The notes under the pieces were generated by a model that saw only the letters and a program-made list of their open reading frames with translations, was not told where the DNA came from and searched no databases. A stretch of DNA of 62,944 nucleotides, the filler included, from Lenisia limosa (taxonomy: Eukaryota; Protista; Breviatea), in assembly GCA_001655205.1 (NCBI GenBank). It is 11 parts of 11 records of this genome, joined end to end, with 100 filler letters (N's around TTAATTAATTAA, not from the genome) between each part and the next. Parts side by side here need not be neighbours in the genome. Positions count along the whole stretch, not along the records: positions 7,078 to 27,087 come from LPNZ01006231.1; 10 more parts are not named here. One strand, written 5' to 3'. The position numbers were made by a program, and so were the translations under genes. Of this stretch, positions 7,078 to 26,640 are shown in pieces. How positions within the stretch are numbered: the stretch's first letter is position 1; every line of letters starts with the position of its first letter.

Positions 7078-7573
7078 ATCAATACAATGCTGCATGTGAA
7101 GATAATGTCATGCAAAAATCCACCCCCAGCATACAGTTCAGTCGGACAGCTTATAGTCAACAAAGACCGTTCCTTTGACTGTGAAGTCAACAAAGATTGA
7201 AGACAAATGTTGACTTCTACTGGCAACATGCATCTGCCATTCAAGCTGAAGTGCATATGTGGGAGTTGGGAGAAGCGCGAGATTGCGCTGTGTGGGACAT
7301 TTACACTCCATGATGAAGAAATTATTATTATCCAAGAAAAACGCGTCAGGGGACATGCACATAACCTTGTCAGTGTCCCAACTGGCCAGAGCTGTCGTCA
7401 CAAGACCACATCTGATAACCTATGTAGGTTAATTCGTGGTAAGATTCCCAAAAGAAAAAAACAATCAATGAGCGGAGGAAATACTTAATAATAATAACAC
7501 AACAAACATAATAACACCAGTCCTACCTTTATTGAGGGGGAGAATGCCGTCTTGATAAACTTTTCAACACAAG

Positions 7574-9760: not shown

Positions 9761-11060
9761 TAATATGCTGAATGTATTGACTCATCTTGTGGGAGGGGGC
9801 AGTGTAACAATACACTAAAACATTGATATATTTTATAATGATTTTATCCCCGTTCACAAAACCCGGTGCTTTTTTTGGATAAATCGGTGTTTTTTTGGAA
9901 TATCGGTGCTATTAGGTTTTTACAGGTAAAAATAGCAAACAATAAATGACCANNNNNNNNNNNNNNNNNNNNNNNNNNNNNNNNNNNNNNNNNNNNNNNN
10001 NNNNNNNNNNNNNNNNNNNNNNNNNNNNNNNNNNNNNNNNNNNNNNNNNNNNNNNNNNNNNNNNNNNNNNNNNNNNNNNNNNNNNNNNNNNNNNNNNNNN
10101 NNNNNNNNNNNNNNNNNNNNNNNNNNNNNNTCATATAGCTCTATATGTATATTATATGTATCTATATAAGCCACTGACAATAAACCCGATGATTATTGTT
10201 TTCAGGAATAATTTTCCCACAGCACAGTCTATAAAATGCTAAGTTTTGGTGTGGTTTCGACATAAGATACAAGGGAATATATTGCACAATAAAGAATCGG
10301 GTAAAGTCGGGTTAACTGAGGGTGGTTGTCAAATATATATAGATATCATATATAGTATACATATATCATATCTATAGTATATAAGTTTTGACCCTTGACA
10401 CCATTCATTTTGAAGATGGACTGACAGAACAGGAATATAGTTAGCGCTACTCCTACCAAAGGTGAAAATGGCCACTTACTCAAAAGTAGAGATTTGGGGA
10501 TTTTGGGCTGACTCTAGTTTAGTATATTTCTAGTTCCGTGTATTTTTGTTCTTAAAATACACTAAACTCAAAACCCCCCTATTTTTAGGAATGTTCCAGA
10601 AACACTGGACTGAAGGCCCATCAATGTAGGAGTCAACCATTGTCTCAATTACAAAAAACACATTTAAAGACAGTGAGAGGCGTACAGAACATACAACTCT
10701 GGTTTAAATATATACCGTACGCCATAAACCATCTTTAGTCCCCATCTTTAAGATATATATGCCTCTAGGAGACACTGGTCAAAATCGGAAATCCCTCCAC
10801 CGAAAAATTCATATATCCGAGCCTAAAATGTTGCCGATAGGGAAGAAAAATCACCAGCCAGCAGAGGTTCCTGAGTGGACCAAAACACGTTGCATAAGCC
10901 GCCTCCGCACAGCACCCGATTTATGTATTATTGTACACTCAAAGGTATTCAACTTGAGAATGAACTATCTAGCTATAAGAGAATTTGGAAGAGAGTCAAT
11001 CGGATATCGGAACATTAGAGGAGTTGTCCAGGTCATTTCTCGCTCACAAAAAAATTGACA

Positions 11061-11698
11061 TCACCAAGCATTTCTTCTTCTGTCATTATCAATTCTGGGT
11101 TTGGCTCATCCCAATCGATGATAGGAGTTGAAACTCTTGGCTTATTAACACAAATATTTCAAATCAGATTATAAGAATAACCTTATTAATGACTGTTCAG
11201 AAGAAATATCAATATTGGAGGTCCTTTCATTTTTTACCCAATATCCTACTCGAAAAAATTCAAAAAGTCATTTAAGTCAAATACCTCTTTCCTTATACGT
11301 GCCAATTAAAAGCATTACAGTAACTTCCAACGGATCTCTGAGTTGACACAAACTCGGCGGATCACACTCATAAGCAAATACAATCCACTGGTAATTGGAA
11401 TCCATGGTTTCCTACAATGACTGGACCTATAGCAACATCTGCTAAAACCAATTCGGGTAAGATTGGGAATTTAGAGTCCTACTTGATCATTCTCAGAATT
11501 CTCAGCTGAGCCAACATAGATTAATTTCCAGTCCAAATCTTCTAACAAAAAACGGTAAATACCCTCTTCTAAAGCTTGTGAACACTCTAATTTAATTTGG
11601 AAGTATATTCTTTCAGAAAATAGAGAAACAGGGTTCTCTATCTAAGGAAATAAATGAAAATGAACTTTAACATCAGTTATTTTGATTGGTGGGCTCAT
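11061..11698 (-). CDS. ASF1: Histone chaperone ASF1, 7 exons; introns 11665-11642 (24 nt, AG), 11562-11539 (24, AG), 11482-11449 (34, TG), 11388-11367 (22, AG), 11284-11261 (24, TG), 11181-11160 (22, TG)
   Basis: Spliced product MSPPIKITDVKIENPVSLFSERIYFQIKLECSQALEEDLDWKLIYVGSAENSENDQVLADVAIGPVIVGNHGFQLPCDPPSLCQLRDPLEVTVMLLIGTYKEREFFRVGYWVKNER...LIRNICVNKPRVSTPIIDWDE matches ASF1 motifs DLEWKIIYVGSA, DQVLDSVLVGP, TYRGQEFIRVGY and RNIL..PRVT...W. The gene is absent from the ORF track. Confidence 0.92.
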
Positions 11699-12229
11699 GA
11701 GTACTCTTGACACAAACTAAAAACTTTAAAAAGAAGAAAACTTGACAAAGTATTAACTGGATTAACTTGAGATTTACCCAAGGGCTGACCAATGCAAGGG
11801 GCCGCTGAGGTGGGGTAACAGGCCTGATGTCTGATTTCCTGATCTGTTTGATCTGTCCTTGATCTGGCTGATGTGCCTGAAGAGCTAAAAAACTGTAATG
11901 GTGTACAGAGAAAAATAAAACTTCGTACTCACCTTATTGTCACCAACAGTTTGCGTGTTCTCAAAATCGCAGTCGGACACAACCATCAGATTGGTGGTGG
12001 AGATTTTGACAGGAGCACTCAGTAGGTCATGAGGCTCAAGATGGAGGAACGAAAATGATGTTGGCTGCCATGTAAAGAATGGAATGGGTCTGAAGACCAA
12101 AGAGAAAAGTTAAGAAAAAGGCAAAATACTGTGTTAATTAACCCCCAACGAACTTCGGGGAAAGGCAGGGCCTCAGGTATATTGTTGACGACAATCTCGG
12201 GGATTTTAGCCATGTTATTTAAAGCCATT

Positions 12230-13070
12230 GTTCTCGCCATTTTAACAAGGTCTCTGGCGCTAACCTTCAGGGATTCTTCGTCAGTTGTATCCACCTGGGG
12301 CACCTCATCGATTACTTTCGGAAGTTTATCCTTCAGAAGTTCGGCCTGGGAGGAACTGCAAGACGTACACTGGTCATGGTTAGGTTGTGCAATCCTTGGG
12401 CAACAAGTTGCTCTGGGTACCGAATCTGGTGATTTAGAAACAGTGATGCCTTTTCAAATCCGGCCATTTGACCAGTTAAGGAAGGACAGCCTCTCATCTT
12501 TCACTCCAACACATGGATGGGGGGGCACACCACGGTTATTTGATGTGATGGTGAAGGGAAGGCCAAGTTTGGGGATAGGATTACACTCGCAGTTGTCGCT
12601 GTCGGGGGAAAGTTGATAGGTTGCAACAACGCTTGGCGGGTTTGAAGCGNNNNNNNNNNTTGTAGAGATGGGCAGTGATGGTACAGGATGGTTGGTTTCA
12701 TGATGACAGAGTTCTCGCCATTTTAACAAGGTCTCTGGCGCTAACCTTCAGGGATTCTTCGTCAGTTGTATCCACGCACCTCGTCGATTACTTTCGGAAG
12801 TTTATCCTTTAGAAGTTCGGCCTGGGAGGAACTGCAAGATGTACACTGGTCATGGTTAGGTTGTGCTATCCTTGGGCAGCAAGTTGCTCTGGGTACCGAA
12901 TCTGGTGATTTAGAAACAGTGATGCCTTTTCGAATCCGGTCATTTGACCAGTTAAGGAAGGACAGCCTCTCATCTTTCACTCCAACACATGGATGGGGGG
13001 GCACACCACAGTTATTTGATGGGATGGTGAAGGGAAGGCCAAGTTTGGGGATAGGATTACACTCCCAGTT
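12230..13070. repeat. Direct duplication of ~360 bp (12230-12594 and 12711-13070) in a decayed minus-strand ORF
   Basis: Manual alignment: 10 substitutions plus a 5-nt indel. Copy 1 has an in-frame TGA where copy 2 has CGA. A small N gap lies between the copies. Confidence 0.85.
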
Positions 13071-13289
13071 NNNNNNNNNNNNNNNNNNNNNNNNNNNNNN
13101 NNNNNNNNNNNNNNNNNNNNNNNNNNNNNNNNNNNNNNNNNNNNNNNNNNNNNNNNNNNNNNNNNNNNNNNNNNNNNNNNNNNNNNNNNNNNNNNNNNNN
13201 NNNNNNNNNNNNNNNNNNNNNNNNNNNNNNNNNNNNNNNNNNNNNNNNNNNNNNNNNNNNNNNNNNNNNNNNNNNNNNNNNNNNTAACT

Positions 13290-13650: not shown

Positions 13651-14490
13651 ATGAACAAAGTAAATGTTGTGTCGCTACTTGGGTCTGGTAGTTTTGGTGA
13701 GGTGTATCTAGCGAAGTGGAGGGGAATTGAAGTTGCGGCTAAAGTTGCAAAACTAAATTCAGAAAAACTTGACTTCTCTTCTTTTGAGAACGAAGCGGCG
13801 ATACTTGCCAGAGTTCGGCATCCTAATTGTGTCCTTTTTTTGAAGGCATCTTTAAAACCAAAGCCAATGATTTTAACTGAGTTTGTGAATGGGGTTACTT
13901 TGTTTGAATTTCTACATTCCCAGATTGCGATTAAATACAAAGAGAGAATTAAAATTGCTCAAGACATTGCTTCAGCTCTATTCTATCTGCACTCTTGTTC
14001 CCCTCCAATTCTTCATAGAGATATTAAGTCTTCAAATGTTTTAGTGTATATAATTTAAGGTAACCAGATTGAACAGCAAAGCAATGAAATATGCGCCAAA
14101 ATTTGTGACTTTGGTTTATCTGTTTTTGCCCATATAAACAAAGGTGTTGTCTTTTTTTTTTATCAAGGTTGTGTTGGAACGATCCCTTGGACAGCGCCGG
14201 AGGTTGTTTTTAAAAATGAGTGTACAAGTGCAAGTGATATCTACTCCTTTGGTGTCATTCTATGGGAACTTCTAAGTAGAAAATGTCCTTATGAAGGACT
14301 CCAAGTTTCTCAGATTTTGGCTTCAATGAGGCAGGGGATGCAACCTGGTGATATTGAAGAAAGCTGGCCCACTTCTCTTCAAAATTTAATCATGTCGTGT
14401 TGGAAGGAAAATATCTCTGAAAGGCCATCATTAGGTTTTATTATTTCTGTTCTCTATAAGTCTTCAGATCTTGAAGTTTTTGAGGAATAG
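13651..14490 (+). CDS. TKL-group protein kinase (kinase domain only); two 24-nt GT-AG introns (14044-14067, 14144-14167)
   Basis: LGSGSFGEVY, VAAK, HRDIKSSNVL, KICDFG, GTIPWTAPE, SDIYSFGVILWEL, CW...RP; TAG stop ends at 14490. Confidence 0.92.
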
Positions 14491-14783: not shown

Positions 14784-15787
14784 TTATTTTTGAAAGTGTT
14801 CCTCAAAAAAAGCGATGAGGTATTGGGCAACAGTAAATGAAAAAACAAGTTTTGGGCCAACAGTCAATAATTTTGGTGTTAGTCCTTTTGTAAACGCTGA
14901 GAGTCCTTCGTTAGAAAGAATATCTTTGACAATTTTTAAACCAGAAGTAGAATCACCAAATCCTTTGTTTTGAATTCTTGTCTTAACAACATCCAGGGGA
15001 GAGGCCACTGAAATTGAAAACAAAGCACCAACAGTACTAGCACAGAAAGTCTGAAGAAATGTTGCCTTTTGGCCATCTTCAATTTTTAAAATTACATTCT
15101 TGATAAGAGACAAGAAAACACACTTTGACAAAAGCATTACCTCCAAAAAGTGCAAAGGAGCCAGGAGCGTTCCTCATGATTGTGAACCCAGTTCCTTTAT
15201 AAAGAGATTTTCCTTCAGTTTTAATAATATCAAAAAATCCACGACCAGCTAATGACAAGAAGTTAAAATAATAACGAACCTCAGGATTAGTTTGGGCCTT
15301 AATCTTCAAAACATCTAATGGAAGTAGGGCCACTTCTCCAATTCCAATTAAACATCCAGCAGTAGCCTCCGTCATTGCGCGACCAGCTTTCTCTCCAAGA
15401 TGGGACTTGAAGAAAGGACCGACAGGAGTTTTGGCAACAAATTCACGAGCAAAAGGCTGTCCACCAAATTTATACACTCTTTGAAGAACTTTGTAGGCAA
15501 CAGCAAATGAAAGACCAGGGAACAATGAAGCATAACGCTTCATAAATGATGCATTGTATGAATCTTTAAAAACAATCTGTGAAACGTGATCTGCTCTCAT
15601 TGCAAAAGACACATTTGGAAGAACAATCTTTGATTGACATGACATTAAGCGCTTTTAGGAATTCCTAGCAAACCTTTGCAATGGTGTCAATTGGATGGAA
15701 TCCCATTAACTCCACAATTCCTGCAGTACCTGATCCCAATACTTTGGCTAAAACGCTACCTCCACCACCATTATTAACCGGCGACAT
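14784..15787 (-). CDS. GGC1: Mitochondrial GTP/GDP carrier; introns 15673-15652 (22 nt, AG), 15279-15256 (24, TG), 15123-15099 (25, AG)
   Basis: LGSGTAGIVELMGFHPIDTIAKRLMS, LFPGL..A..YKVLQRVYKFGGQP, IGIGEVALLPLDVLKIK, RNAPGSFALFGGNAF and KGLTPKLLTVGPKLVFSF are near-identical to yeast Ggc1 motifs. Confidence 0.95.
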
Positions 15788-21108: not shown

Positions 21109-22166
21109 TCATGAAATCCCCCTCAAAAAATCAGGAAGTTGCTGCTGTGGAAACCCATACTCAGCAAAAATACAAAATAAAAGCGAAAAAAACAACTTAG
21201 AATTTGGCTGTGGTTCTTCTAAAAAAAAAGGGTGCTTCAAGGCTTCTCTGGCTGTAATACGCTTGAGAGGAGAATAACAAAGAAGTTTTAAAAGTAGATC
21301 TTGTCCACTTGACGATATTCCTGATGGTAGAGAAGTGTTGAAAAACTTCCAATCAGACACAAGCTCAAAGTGTGGAAAACACATCAAGTCATTATCAGCA
21401 GGTGTGCCCAAAACTGAAAATATTTTTTTTAGTTGCTCAAGGTGAATGTTCCCACACTCTTTCCCTTGAAAGAGAGGCTTCAATGTTAAAAGCTCTCCAA
21501 AAATACAACCTACTGCCCAAATATCGACAGCAGAAGAGTAATGACGACATCCAAGTAATAACTCAGGTGCCCTGTACCAAAGCGTTACCACAACTCCATT
21601 TTCATGAAATGATCTTAAAGGCTCTTTAAAGCAGCGAGCTAAGCCAAAGTCCGCTGATAAACTATTTGAAACAAACCGATCTTAACAATTCCATAGAACC
21701 TGTTAAGCAAAATTAAAACATTTGAGGGCTTTATATCACGATGAACAACCCAATTACGATGTAAAAACTCAATGCCTTTGAGAATCTGCCATAACAATGT
21801 TTTTGATACAGAGAGAGGAAGCCAAGTTGTTAGAATAACTGGGTACCTTTTTCTTGATTGACCATAAGCCCGCAACATTTGAAACAAATCAAAAGTTGCA
21901 TATTCAAATATAAGTATCACATTACTGGAATCATAATCTGTATCTACTTCAACTAAAGATATAATATTAGGATGTTGAAGTTCCTTCAAAAGACATAATT
22001 CTCTTACAGTTGAGAGAGAAATCCCTTCAATGCTGATTGATGATTTAAAAAATTTTACTGCAACAAATTTGCCCTCCAAAACTCCTTTAAAGACTTTCCC
22101 ATAGGTTCCTTCTCCAATCTTTGCTATAATTTGAAAGGATGATGATTTTCCGTCTTTTCTTATCAT
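21109..22166 (-). CDS. CDK8: CDK8-like cyclin-dependent kinase; introns 21846-21823 (24 nt, TG), 21676-21654 (23, AG), 21196-21173 (24, TG)
   Basis: IGEGTYGKVFKG, GISLSTVRELCLLKELQHPNII, FLHRNWVVHRDIKPSN, ADFGLARCFKEPLRSFHENGVVVTLWYRAPELLLGCRHY and EEPQPNSNIFA are CDK8/19-type features. Confidence 0.88.
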
Positions 22167-23585
22167 ACTAGCACACCCAAACCCTGCTGCAGACCAACTG
22201 ATGAAGAGATGACTGCCTGACTTTGGGCTGACGACACGGAGCTGACCAAACCCACCCTGGGTACAGGGGCTCCAAGCGACGCTTGCTGTACCCTCCAGGG
22301 GCTCCAAGTGACGTGCCCCCGGCCACTTGTAATAATTCGTTGCTAAATGTCGAAAAATGACTGGAAAAAAAATGCTGCAAAACAGTCTCACTGAAATTAG
22401 AAACTCGTGCTAAATTAATATTGTTAATATACCCAGCAGTGATATGTTGCCATTAGGTTGAAGAAGGTGATTTGTAGAAGAAACTCGAAATTGAAACAAA
22501 ACCTGGCTCAATATACGTTTGTTGCCTTTTTTATTGATAATAGAACAAGAGAAATTAGAGAAGCGGAGGTTTTGGAGGATGAAAAGAAGGGCTCAAGCCT
22601 GGTTAGTGTTTTATGTTTGATTATAGTCCGTGTTATTCTTTTAAAATATTTTTATCTCCCTAGGGCAAAAAATACACTAATTTTGCTGTTGAGATTGATT
22701 GCAAATCAAGTTCCATTTTAAGTCATCGAATTGTGGTAACAAGCCAGGACGAAAAGGTAGGTCTACATGGTGCACTTGAGAGATAACCTTTTGCTGTAGA
22801 GAGCGCCAAGTCCAAGCGCAAGGTCCTTCGCAAGAAGCGCCTCACACACAAGGACATCAATTCACGACTATCGTGGGAACTCAGGTTTTCTTCCTGTTCG
22901 TGTTTGTGGGGTTTATGAGCATGTTTACCAACTGTTGTGTTTTTCTTCATTGCAGTTTTTTTTTGCTACAGTGGGAGTATTTATTGAGTTTTTAGAGAAT
23001 ACAGTTTTTGTCAACCCCATCTTACAATAGAGCCTCCATCACCAAATTATCCTCTTTTGTGACTACAGTCCTCAACCAACTCAGATTCGCTGAGTTATCA
23101 TTCTTTTCTTGCTGCCTCTCCGATTATGTCAAATATACCTGGGTCCCATCCATAGCTAAGCGGATCACGTCCAACTTTCAGTTCCCCGACAGAGTGTCTC
23201 AGAAGTCCGAACGTTTGGGTCATTCTCATCTGTATGTGATTGTATTCTGTTGTCATTGTTTAGCTTCTCCAATTTATCGGGCTTCGAAACCAGGCAGCGC
23301 AATATTTTGTACACTCTGAGTCCTTTCGTAAATCTTTTCCTATTTCATCCTCCCAAGTATGTGGGTGCGGTGAGTATGTATTATATATAGCTATATATAT
23401 AAATCTCTCATTGAACAGTCACCTCACACTGATGACTCTGCCTTCGCAGAATTTGTTCAGATACGTATCTGGGTGATTAATAACAGTTTAGCAATGCCCA
23501 GAAATTCAAATCGTGATGAAGTCTATTGACGACTATAAAATGAAAATTCCCAAGCAAGATGTCGAGCACCCCATTTTCAAATTAT

Positions 23586-24907
23586 TTATTCATTTGAAGG
23601 CCTTTCAGTTGTTCTTGTCAGAGGGATTCCAGAAACTTGCAACATGGAGTCAAACCACTGGAACACACGGGGACGACACATCTCACTTGACTCAGTGTGA
23701 ACGGTTGTACCTAAAAGTCAACAAACAGCAATGCCAAACCAGCCGACTCTTGCTTCATAGAAGAATTTACAAGTAATTCCCCGAGTGGCTTTGAACTGCA
23801 TTTCCCTGATTCAATTATGATTACTATTATTCCCACAGTTGCAAATTTTATTCCTCACGAAACTTCGAATGACTGGATTTTCATGAGGCATATAGGAGTG
23901 AGAGCAGTCAGTTAGAGCTACACATCGCAAACGCTTTAAACAAGGTCCTGAAATGGTTACAGGACAGATCCTACCATAATAGTTCAACAAATGCGCAATA
24001 GCAGCACCCCCATAAGAATGAGCAACAAACACAATGTCCTTTGCTTCTGCTCTTTCAACAATATTCTTATACACATACACCTAATTTGTCAAGTTTTGTT
24101 TGATAGCATACAATATGGTCCAAAGGTTGTAAAGGACTTCTTAAAGATGAAGTAGATCTACGTGTAAAAAGGCAAAAATAACCTTTCCACTTTTTGCTTC
24201 TTGTTTCTAGGCTCTTTATGTCCACGTATGTCATTTGGGTTTAAAATCTAAAAAAAAATCAATTCTAAAATCTAAGCCAACCAAAGTACCCCAACCACGG
24301 TTATTGGCCTCCTACAACTATTAAATGAAGTTCAACCTGGTAACAGACTTTAATATAAGGTCCAACTGTTCCCATATCAAGAGAGTTATTTATACACAAA
24401 GCTCGAGCCCATTGACCACATCTCACAGCTCTAAGAGGTTCAACACGACGCAAGCAAGACCAACCCCATGCCTTGACAAATTACCATCAGCTTTTCTGAT
24501 TCCAAGCAATTTTTTGTTCCTAAAACAAAGGAACATTCTTCTTCTGCTTCTGCATCAACAGGACAGGATACATAATCTAGATCATATTTATCTTGAAGGT
24601 AAGCCTAAAATCAATAAATTCCTGATAAATTCAAGCCAAACCTGGACATACTGCTCAACAGTATCGCCCAATTTCTCATAGTGGTCTTGGTCTTCAAACT
24701 AAAATATAATACTTTTGAAAAGAGTCCGTCCAACTAGAACCAAGAACCCACCCATACCTCAAAACCATTGCCAGTTTTCAGACTAATCATTTTACCATTT
24801 TTGTTAAACTTGTATCCCAGCTCCCCTAGCTTGATTTTTCCAGTATTTAAAGAAAAGAATGGCTGAGATGGGGGTGTGGAAGCAGTTGAGAGAGAAGGAA
24901 GCTTCAT
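23586..24907 (-). CDS. FAM172A: FAM172A/Arb2-domain protein, 11 exons, ten GT-AG introns of 25-59 nt
   Basis: [71 protein letters not shown], CNW...S.KPL and SAGTTVH match FAM172A motifs; all phases are consistent. Confidence 0.92.
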
Positions 24908-25139: not shown

Positions 25140-26640
25140 AATTATACACCAATAATGATTCTACATCGTTTTCGAGGGTCTTTGGAAGACGACAATACTC
25201 TTTCACGCTCCCCATTTTTGTCAACAAAATCAGAGATCATGGCATATCTCAAAAAATCACTGATCAATGACATGCCTTTTTTTGCTCCACTCTTTGCTCC
25301 TGGGTTTGAGATTATGTTGGTTTATAATACAGAACAGTCGACTGATGGNNNNNNNNNNCATATCATGAATGTTTCATTACGTTTCTTAATTTTGTTTTAG
25401 CATTGGCCTTTATTACTGAAAAAATATTTCCTTGATCAGGTGTAACTTCCATCTAATGTGTTTAGCTTTGCTTGACTACAGACACTTCAAACCTCTCAAC
25501 CTCGGCTTCCGACGGCGGACGTTTACAATCTCTTACGGGAGAACATTGTCACCTCTAATGGTACGGCTTTTGATGATGAAGAAAGCTCAATTTGTGCATT
25601 TGTGATACTCCATGCAATCCCTTCTGTAATAATAAAACTAAATTCCAATATTGTTATCGGTTTTTGCTTTGTCTCATCATGAATATTGTTTCCTTCTCTT
25701 CTTCCCAGATTGATACTTTTTTTCAAAATCCCAGGGCATACAACCACCATCGTGGGAGAATTTACAAGGAAACAAAGTCGTATTCGATGCCACCTTTGTT
25801 GAAAATACAAAGCAGAAAAAATTGACAAGTATTGAGATTTCTAGACTTGATAAGGCCAAAAAAAATCAATCACAGACTGGAAAAAATATGCAGCCAAGAG
25901 AAGCACAAAGAACGCTGCCAACTACAACGTTTGATTTTTTTTTTTTTATCAAATGGGGATGTACTTGTTGTAACTCCTACCAAAGTAGTTTCTACCACCT
26001 CTATTAAAAATGGGATTTATTGTAACACTTTTCTTGACAAATCACTTTCCCCAAAAACAGATGTTATTTTCCCACCACAACCTCTGTGTCTTGGTGTTGG
26101 GATTGATGATGAGGAATTTTCTAGACTAAGCAACTGTGATTTTGAATCAGAGACCAGTGAAGTAGCGGCATTTTTTTTCTATTTTCAGAATTTTGACCGA
26201 TCAAATTTTTTTGCTTTTCCAGGTTTGAGTTCGATTAATAAGCTAAACGGTCTTTGAAAGCAGGTGAAAGAAAAATTGGCCCCCAAGAAGAACATAGTGA
26301 CCTTTATATTAAAAATACATGTAAGCCAGCTTTGGAACTGCATGACAGACTTGAGGCGGAGGAGTGCGTGAGACTCTGTGAAATAGTTGATATTCTTTTC
26401 GCTTTTAACAACACATTGCTTTTTGAGTGACGAAATGTTTCTTTCTTAGAGTCCTGATAATTGCAAAAGAAGTGCTTTGAAAAATGTTAACGGGCTTGAG
26501 GATCCAGAGAAGCCAACACCAGTGGAGATTTGTGATTTTCATACACAATTTGTTGATGAGCTAATGAAAATTCAGAAGATCAGTGAAATTAAAAACCCTC
26601 TTGAAATTTATAAAAAACTTATCTCACAATTTATTTGAAC
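25140..26640 (+). CDS. Multi-exon gene of unknown product with mini-introns (structure unresolved)
   Basis: Protein-like segments (AYLKKSLINDMPFFAPLFAPGFEIM; DVLVVTPTKVV; ALELHDRLEAEECVRLCEI; DFHTQFVDELMKIQK) are separated by 23-28-nt GT-starting stretches, some ending in TG. No single consistent model was obtained. Confidence 0.4.

Follow-up and report, generated by a model that had tools for sequence, protein, structure and literature searches.

No signal of nuclear introns is more invariant than the AG dinucleotide at their 3' end, which is read twice, early by U2AF35 and again by the catalytic core at exon ligation. In structures of the second-step spliceosome, G(-1) pairs with the G(+1) of the 5' splice site and A(-2) contacts the branch adenosine, while U2AF35 reads the 3' AG at an earlier stage. 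Abundant non-canonical introns are present in Oikopleura, Fritillaria, euglenids, Amoebophrya and dinoflagellates, and they are still processed. The departures in these organisms lie mainly at the 5' end (G*-AG, GC/GA-AG) or at both ends (AG-AC), or they belong to structure-dependent non-conventional introns. We know of none of these lineages that has GT-TG introns with a plain A-to-U change at position -2.

The closest described systems are found in human and in a yeast mutant. Human U2-dependent TG-AG tandem 3' splice sites occur in 36 introns genome-wide (Szafranski et al. 2007, Genome Biol 8:R154, PMC2374985). The TG is an alternative to an AG at most 28 nt away, which led to the proposal that AG is used for step 1 and TG at step 2, and the human data led to the conclusion that a constitutive TG is impossible (PMC2374985). 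In yeast without Prp18, UUG, AUG, ACG and UGG 3' sites are activated and need a strong poly(U) tract, which shows that relaxed second-step fidelity lets the catalytic core accept U at -2 (Roy et al. 2023, bioRxiv 10.1101/2023.01.12.523824).

Ultra-short introns have been described in Paramecium, Stentor, chlorarachniophyte nucleomorphs, dicyemids and myxobolid myxozoans (PMC13644364, PMC6543705, PMC2222250), the dicyemids and myxobolids being animals with introns shorter than 30 nt (PMC13644364, PMC6736024). Non-AG acceptors are not mentioned for these lineages in PMC13644364, PMC6543705 and PMC2222250, and the logos of PMC13644364 were derived from annotated introns. A full-text literature search, which had the original Lenisia paper outside its scope, found no report of intron size in breviates or of their use of non-AG acceptors.

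The window analysed here, 62,944 nucleotides in its full length with filler, consists of 11 parts joined end to end. The present analysis concerns positions 7078-27087, a piece of about 20 kb of Lenisia limosa to which all intron counts are confined. This piece is AT-rich (GC about 0.30-0.47, mostly 0.35-0.41) and belongs to a gapped draft, with runs of N at 9953-10130, 12650-12659, 13071-13284 and 25349-25358. Its genes terminate with all three standard stop codons. The window almost certainly represents nuclear DNA of Lenisia limosa, a breviate, or of a near-identical strain. This assignment comes from the 171/171 ASF1 protein match given below, and it agrees with the source of the sequencing runs and with an ENA metagenome-assembly contig bearing the same genes. 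Tiny introns, a GC of 37% and the N gaps are also reminiscent of a dicyemid or a myxobolid myxozoan, but the best relatives of the carrier gene described below (fungi, stramenopiles, Pygsuia) and the ASF1 match speak against both, and the use of all three stop codons excludes most ciliates.

The ASF1 gene and its introns

The gene model for the histone chaperone ASF1 and its introns is as follows.

11033..11698, minus strand: ASF1 histone-chaperone gene, 7 exons, 6 introns, 171 aa; ATG at 11698, TGA ending at 11033
11642..11665, minus strand: intron 1, 24 nt, GT..TTAG, canonical
11539..11562, minus strand: intron 2, 24 nt, GT..GAAG, canonical
11449..11482, minus strand: intron 3, 34 nt, GTAGGA...GAATTG, frame-shifting; next AG at +7 nt
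11367..11388, minus strand: intron 4, 22 nt, GT..TGAG, canonical
11261..11284, minus strand: intron 5, 24 nt, GTATTT...TTTTTG, in frame with two TGA; next AG at +12 nt
11160..11181, minus strand: intron 6, 22 nt, GTTATT...GATTTG, frame-shifting; next AG at +19 nt

The six introns are 22-34 nt long and the exons 33-127 nt. The identical 171-aa transcript ORF described below, which served as query in place of the spliced genomic product, matched the Pfam family PF04729 (ASF1_hist_chap) with E 1e-40 across positions 4-154 of the 154-position profile. In a search of solved structures its top matches were ASF1 chains, with human ASF1B first (E 2.2e-29). The stop-free frame of exons 2-3 (56 residues) matched human ASF1B with E 2.9e-06, and the unspliced intron 2 appeared as a gap in the alignment. 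Single ASF1 exons, which are too short as queries, gave no ASF1 match in Pfam or among the solved structures. Positions 11033-11698 encode a full-length ASF1.

The first-pass annotation had proposed that three of the six introns run from GT to TTG, and its borders at 11482-11449, 11284-11261 and 11181-11160 are correct to the base. It is also right that the ORF cannot be read through these segments: leaving in either the 34-nt or the 22-nt segment changes the frame, and the 24-nt segment has two in-frame TGAs, the unspliced intron 5 reading TYKERGI*LK*LFEFFRVGY in frame 1. Removal of exactly GT...TTG restores the ASF1 protein, as had been proposed, with ungapped alignment to human ASF1B at all three junctions (marked by a slash): NDQ/VLADVAIGPV versus FDQ/ILDSVLVGPV for intron 3, TYKER/EFFRVGYW versus TYHGQ/EFIRVGYY for intron 5, and SLIR/NICVNKPRV versus QLQR/NILASNPRV for intron 6. 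The nearby AGs, judged unusable in the first pass, proved to be so when read from the sequence. The AG at +7 after intron 3 leads to a stop, that at +12 after intron 5 removes the conserved EFFR, and that at +19 after intron 6 shifts the frame.

Transcript evidence came from the last ASF1 exon (41 residues), which was searched against 1.84 billion representative proteins. The search returned one 171-residue protein with a 100% match over residues 131-171. This protein is EukProt EP01086_Lenisia_limosa_P014881, from TRINITY_DN464_c0_g1_i4.p1, with the ORF type given as complete. The EukProt Lenisia limosa ORF was derived from a de novo Trinity assembly in which no splice-site model or genome was used. 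The genome spliced at the GT..TG borders and the Trinity ORF are identical at 171 of 171 residues, and all three TG-intron junctions are present in the transcript ORF. A de novo transcript made without splice rules thus lacks exactly the three GT..TTG segments, and the proposal that these segments are spliced out is borne out by their absence from an assembled complete ORF. The Trinity gene TRINITY_DN464_c0_g1 has at least four isoforms, the matching transcript being i4.

A DNA run and a polyA metatranscriptome are paired in one 2016 study. The polyA RNA run contains 0.38 of the sampled 31-mers of ASF1; the computed ceiling is 0.48 with all six introns out and 0.75 with the TG introns kept. 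When contigs of the RNA run were aligned to the piece, none was placed on ASF1 despite 38% of its words being in the run, and contigs built of exons of 33-127 nt probably escape contig placement. A 38-mer of the last exon had no exact match among JGI metagenome contigs. From the transcript, it is very probable that the three ASF1 segments are introns at the RNA level, with GT-TG ends that are productively used.

The borders of the TG introns are exact except for a slide of one base, GT..TG or GG..TT giving the same product, and no border compatible with the transcript yields a terminal AG. The 5' GT is present in the three ASF1 TG introns and in an intron of a mitochondrial carrier gene described below, and is followed by A or T. 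The U12-type consensus (5' RTATCCTT, branch TCCTTAAC) is missing, the 5' ends being GTAGGA, GTATTT, GTTATT and GTTCGT. At the 3' ends we found ATTG, TTTG, TTTG and CTTG, and TTTG in a further candidate in a CDK8-like gene, so that UUG is present every time. The TG introns are similar to their AG neighbours in length, in GT followed by A or T, and in the U-rich body. They contain no AG beyond the first five bases. Each TG is preceded, at a distance of 8-10 nt, by an A that is a candidate branch point, although the introns are few and no conserved motif surrounds it.

The introns ending in AG also contain TTGs. Intron 2 of ASF1 has an unused TTTTTTG at intron position 17 and is spliced at position 24, and other AG introns have internal TTGs between positions 5 and 14. 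The use of TTG is selective, and the pattern fits a minimum-length or distance rule. Intron 2 also has a tandem acceptor (TTAG, then AAG). The transcript takes the distal AAG (24 nt), and the proximal TAG, 3 nt upstream (21 nt), would add one Glu.

Predicted GT..TG introns in other genes and their local frequency

The other gene models of the piece that bear on intron ends are listed below.

14784..15787, minus strand: GGC1/YHM1-like mitochondrial carrier gene, three introns, Pfam Mito_carr
15673-15652 (GT..AG), 15279-15256 (GT..TG) and 15123-15099 (GT..AG), minus strand: carrier introns of the gene model
15256..15279, minus strand: carrier TG intron, 24 nt, GT...CTTG, in frame, no stop; next AG at +7 nt
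13651-14490, plus strand: small kinase gene (Pkinase / PK_Tyr_Ser-Thr), with 24-nt GT..AG introns at 14044-14067 and 14144-14167
21112-22391, minus strand: CDK8-like kinase gene, human CDK8 top among solved structures (E about 5e-36), with a 23-nt GT..AG intron at 21676-21654
21173..21196, minus strand: candidate fifth TG intron, 24 nt, GT...TTTTG, in the C-terminal tail of the CDK8-like gene (22391-21112)
23590-24907, minus strand: Arb2/FAM172A-like gene, one exon with Pfam Arb2 (E 6.9e-05), modelled from frames and the human protein

Among named relatives, Ggc1 GTP/GDP carriers stand closest to the carrier, and the best matches reach 57-58% identity. Its best relatives come from fungi, from stramenopiles and from Pygsuia, another breviate; the top 120 include no animal protein. 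Lenisia lives anaerobically and has reduced mitochondrion-related organelles, and for this reason the presence of a carrier gene is worth noting. The translated TG intron of the carrier, VRYYFNFL, is an insertion of eight residues that is missing in 38 of 38 aligned homologs, and without it the junction QTNPE/SLAGRG is the exact sequence of one homolog over this stretch. No Lenisia transcript ORF was among the matches of the homolog search with the carrier. By homology, 15279-15256 reads as a fourth GT..TTG intron, and places the same pattern in a second gene.

The candidate at 21196-21173 could be a fifth TG intron, and we regard this assignment as weak. With it removed, the CDK8-like protein reads PNSNIFAE against PTSDVFAG of human CDK8; the unspliced SKLFFS also aligns, and the frame imposes neither reading. 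A homolog search with the C-terminal exon of this gene, over a length range below that of the full-length kinase, gave no Lenisia transcript ORF.

The same 20 kb contains 18 GT..AG introns, between 22 and 89 nt in length. ASF1 has three of them, the carrier and the small kinase two each, the CDK8-like gene one and the Arb2/FAM172A-like gene nine, and one was seen directly in an RNA contig. The nine of the Arb2/FAM172A-like model are 59, 37, 34, 68, 25, 31, 27, 31 and 29 nt long, and none has a TG acceptor. All TG introns are among the short ones (22-34 nt), most introns of the piece being about 21-37 nt. The share ending in TG is roughly one in five, or about 4-5 among the 22-23 introns of this 20-kb piece, a figure in which the intron models come mostly from frame and homology, some from human orthologs, and RNA support for TG ends comes from ASF1. 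A sizeable share of the Lenisia introns in the piece departs from GT-AG, as in the lineages with abundant non-canonical introns. The first-pass annotation had stated that the spliceosome of this organism routinely uses TTG as a sole acceptor. The word routinely holds within the piece, by the carrier intron and the local count, and we limit the claim to that extent.

Several other features of the piece were observed. DNA word depth, about 44 elsewhere, rises to about 220-380 in the stretches 12230-12649 and 10551-10718, which are matched by diverged contigs with about 2-7% differences (9/410 and 8/118 letters in the two contigs listed). These stretches look like a repeated element family upstream of ASF1, where the GC is raised (0.47). 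At 11932-12228 (minus strand) a 359-nt RNA contig aligns with few mismatches and shows an 89-nt GT..AG intron at 12153-12065, in the gene upstream of ASF1. It departs from the genome at 11932, just before GTGAGT, and its next 149 nt lie outside the window; the departing part may reflect an exon further away, a paralogous gene or a chimera in the contig. An ORF at 7141-7419 (minus strand) has a weak YqaJ-like recombinase match (E 0.0033) and is possibly a transposon remnant. Rfam and tRNA scans of 7078-27087 gave no matches.

The AGs that follow the TG introns raise the question whether TG is the sole acceptor. If TG were used only in tandem with a nearby AG, the AG would serve the first step through U2AF35 and the TG would be taken at exon ligation, so that TG would not truly act alone. 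AGs lie at +7, +12, +19 and +7 nt after the four TG sites, within the 28-nt limit of the human tandems, and human layouts of TTG,N(5)AG and TTG,N(7)AG exist (PMC2374985). The Lenisia introns are like these tandems in the GT...TG ends, in a YTG (often TTG) behind a pyrimidine stretch, and in the AG within 28 nt downstream. However, AGs at such distances are expected by chance; after the 18 GT-AG introns the next AG is mostly at +2 to +24, with none within 25 nt in four of them. The human TG is never constitutive, nor the sole or productive site, and is found in long introns in which the nearby AG is functional and both products are usually viable. In contrast, the Lenisia TG gives the only intact ORF of the essential ASF1, in introns of 22-34 nt, and use of the AGs would break the frame or remove conserved residues such as EFFR. 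The TG share of about one fifth here also differs from 36 introns across the human genome. We consider a dependence on the downstream AG possible but rather unlikely. Of the claim that TTG is the sole acceptor, the part that stands is that only TG yields a functional mRNA; the AGs 7-19 nt downstream allow an AG-dependent first step.

DNA evidence at the TG sites

An independent contig of the DNA run covers 10669-11907 with 0 differences from the genome, has no joint at the TG segments, and has a depth of 43.5, equal to that of the adjacent flanks. The contig being continuous with flank-like depth, the TG segments are present in DNA. The three ASF1 segments are therefore found in DNA and are absent from the mature mRNA. 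The T at -2, which the first pass had left to be confirmed in genomic reads, is the base in this contig. The ENA metaSPAdes assembly has identical DNA at the carrier TG site and at the CDK8-like candidate. No other near-identical ASF1 was found in a collection of 5.8 billion proteins, the next best being 44% identical, and no second placement of the ASF1 locus was seen in the DNA-run contigs.

These data bear on whether the mRNA may come from another ASF1 copy in which all introns end in AG, 11033-11698 being an untranscribed pseudogene with mutated acceptors. Protein identity cannot separate copies with identical exons. However, the locus is intact in start, stop, all frames and 171/171 identity, and three independent A-to-T changes at -2 without other damage are implausible. 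The RNA run carries exact 31-mers of the 11033-11698 locus, the DNA depth equals that of the flanks with no second placement, and the next-best ASF1 protein in the collection is only 44% identical. The unrelated carrier gene shows GT..TTG too. A second copy as the source of the mRNA is very improbable on these grounds, and an intact all-AG ASF1 elsewhere, which the first pass had named as refuting its proposal, did not emerge from the search of the 5.8 billion proteins.

Removal by a route other than the spliceosome, either a DNA elimination like that of ciliate IESs or another RNA-processing pathway, would fit the short size of the segments and the border repeats of 1-2 bases that permit the one-base slide. 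But the segments are retained in the DNA contigs with no joint, no TA or pointer-type border of the ciliate type was found (the borders share at most 1-2 bases), and in their GT start, U-rich body and length the segments cannot be told from the flanking GT-AG introns of ASF1. We know of no nuclear dualism in breviates. The chance of such a route appears very slim.

Even in a gapped draft with N runs, it is scarcely credible that an error of sequencing or assembly put a T at -2 in what are really TAG acceptors. The identical A-to-T error would be needed at the same intron position in four or five sites, the Logan contig of the DNA run has 0 differences over ASF1, and the ENA metaSPAdes contig agrees at the carrier and CDK8-like sites. 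The depth is about 44-47x.

Proposed use of a UUG acceptor

Our preferred reading is that the 3' site is defined by distance and by the U tract, with relaxed fidelity at -2. The ASF1 TG segments would be ordinary U2-type spliceosomal introns except for the last dinucleotide, with exon ligation taking place after UUG and not after YAG. In introns as short as these, the 3' site may be set mainly by how far it lies from the 5' site and the branch point, together with the U-run before it. The strict demand would be at G(-1) alone, with U tolerated in place of A at -2. Second-step fidelity at -2 may be relaxed through Prp18, Slu7, Prp8 or Prp22, and the reading by U2AF35 at the first step may be relaxed as well. 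We infer the spliceosomal route, the relaxed specificity at -2 and the genome-wide frequency from the features described above.

Two of the known systems resemble Lenisia in part. As in yeast lacking Prp18, exons are ligated at BG sites including UUG, and the Lenisia UUG lies behind a U-rich stretch. In the yeast mutant, UUG use is low-level and mostly unproductive, whereas in Lenisia it is found in the wild type and is productive. As in the lineages with ultra-short introns, the Lenisia introns are about 20-30 nt long, the 5' signal is reduced to GT followed by A, T or G, and the polypyrimidine tract is short or absent. What we rate as new are spliceosomal introns whose UG 3' end is frequent, constitutive and productive; in the literature searched, breviates are not listed among the lineages with tiny introns.

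A wider reading is that in Lenisia limosa, and perhaps in breviates generally, A(-2) is no longer required. About a fifth of the tiny introns would then end in UUG, constitutively and productively, with the site chosen by distance, U-run and G(-1), possibly after loss or change of a second-step fidelity factor (the Prp18/Slu7/Prp8 interface, Prp22) or of the AG reading by U2AF35. Lenisia would be the first known organism with a naturally degenerate 3' dinucleotide. We give this reading an even chance.

Essential genes that depend on UUG acceptors offer a natural experiment in how splice fidelity is built and relaxed, and the question becomes testable through a comparison of Prp18, Slu7, Prp8, Prp22 and U2AF35 between Lenisia and its relatives. 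Software for gene finding or spliced alignment that accepts GT/GC-AG ends only would break or miss a large share of the genes, as three of the six introns of ASF1 illustrate. The missed TG introns would lower completeness scores and skew the inference of gene content for early opisthokont and Obazoa evolution. With the tiny introns of this breviate, extreme intron shortening gains a further independent origin.
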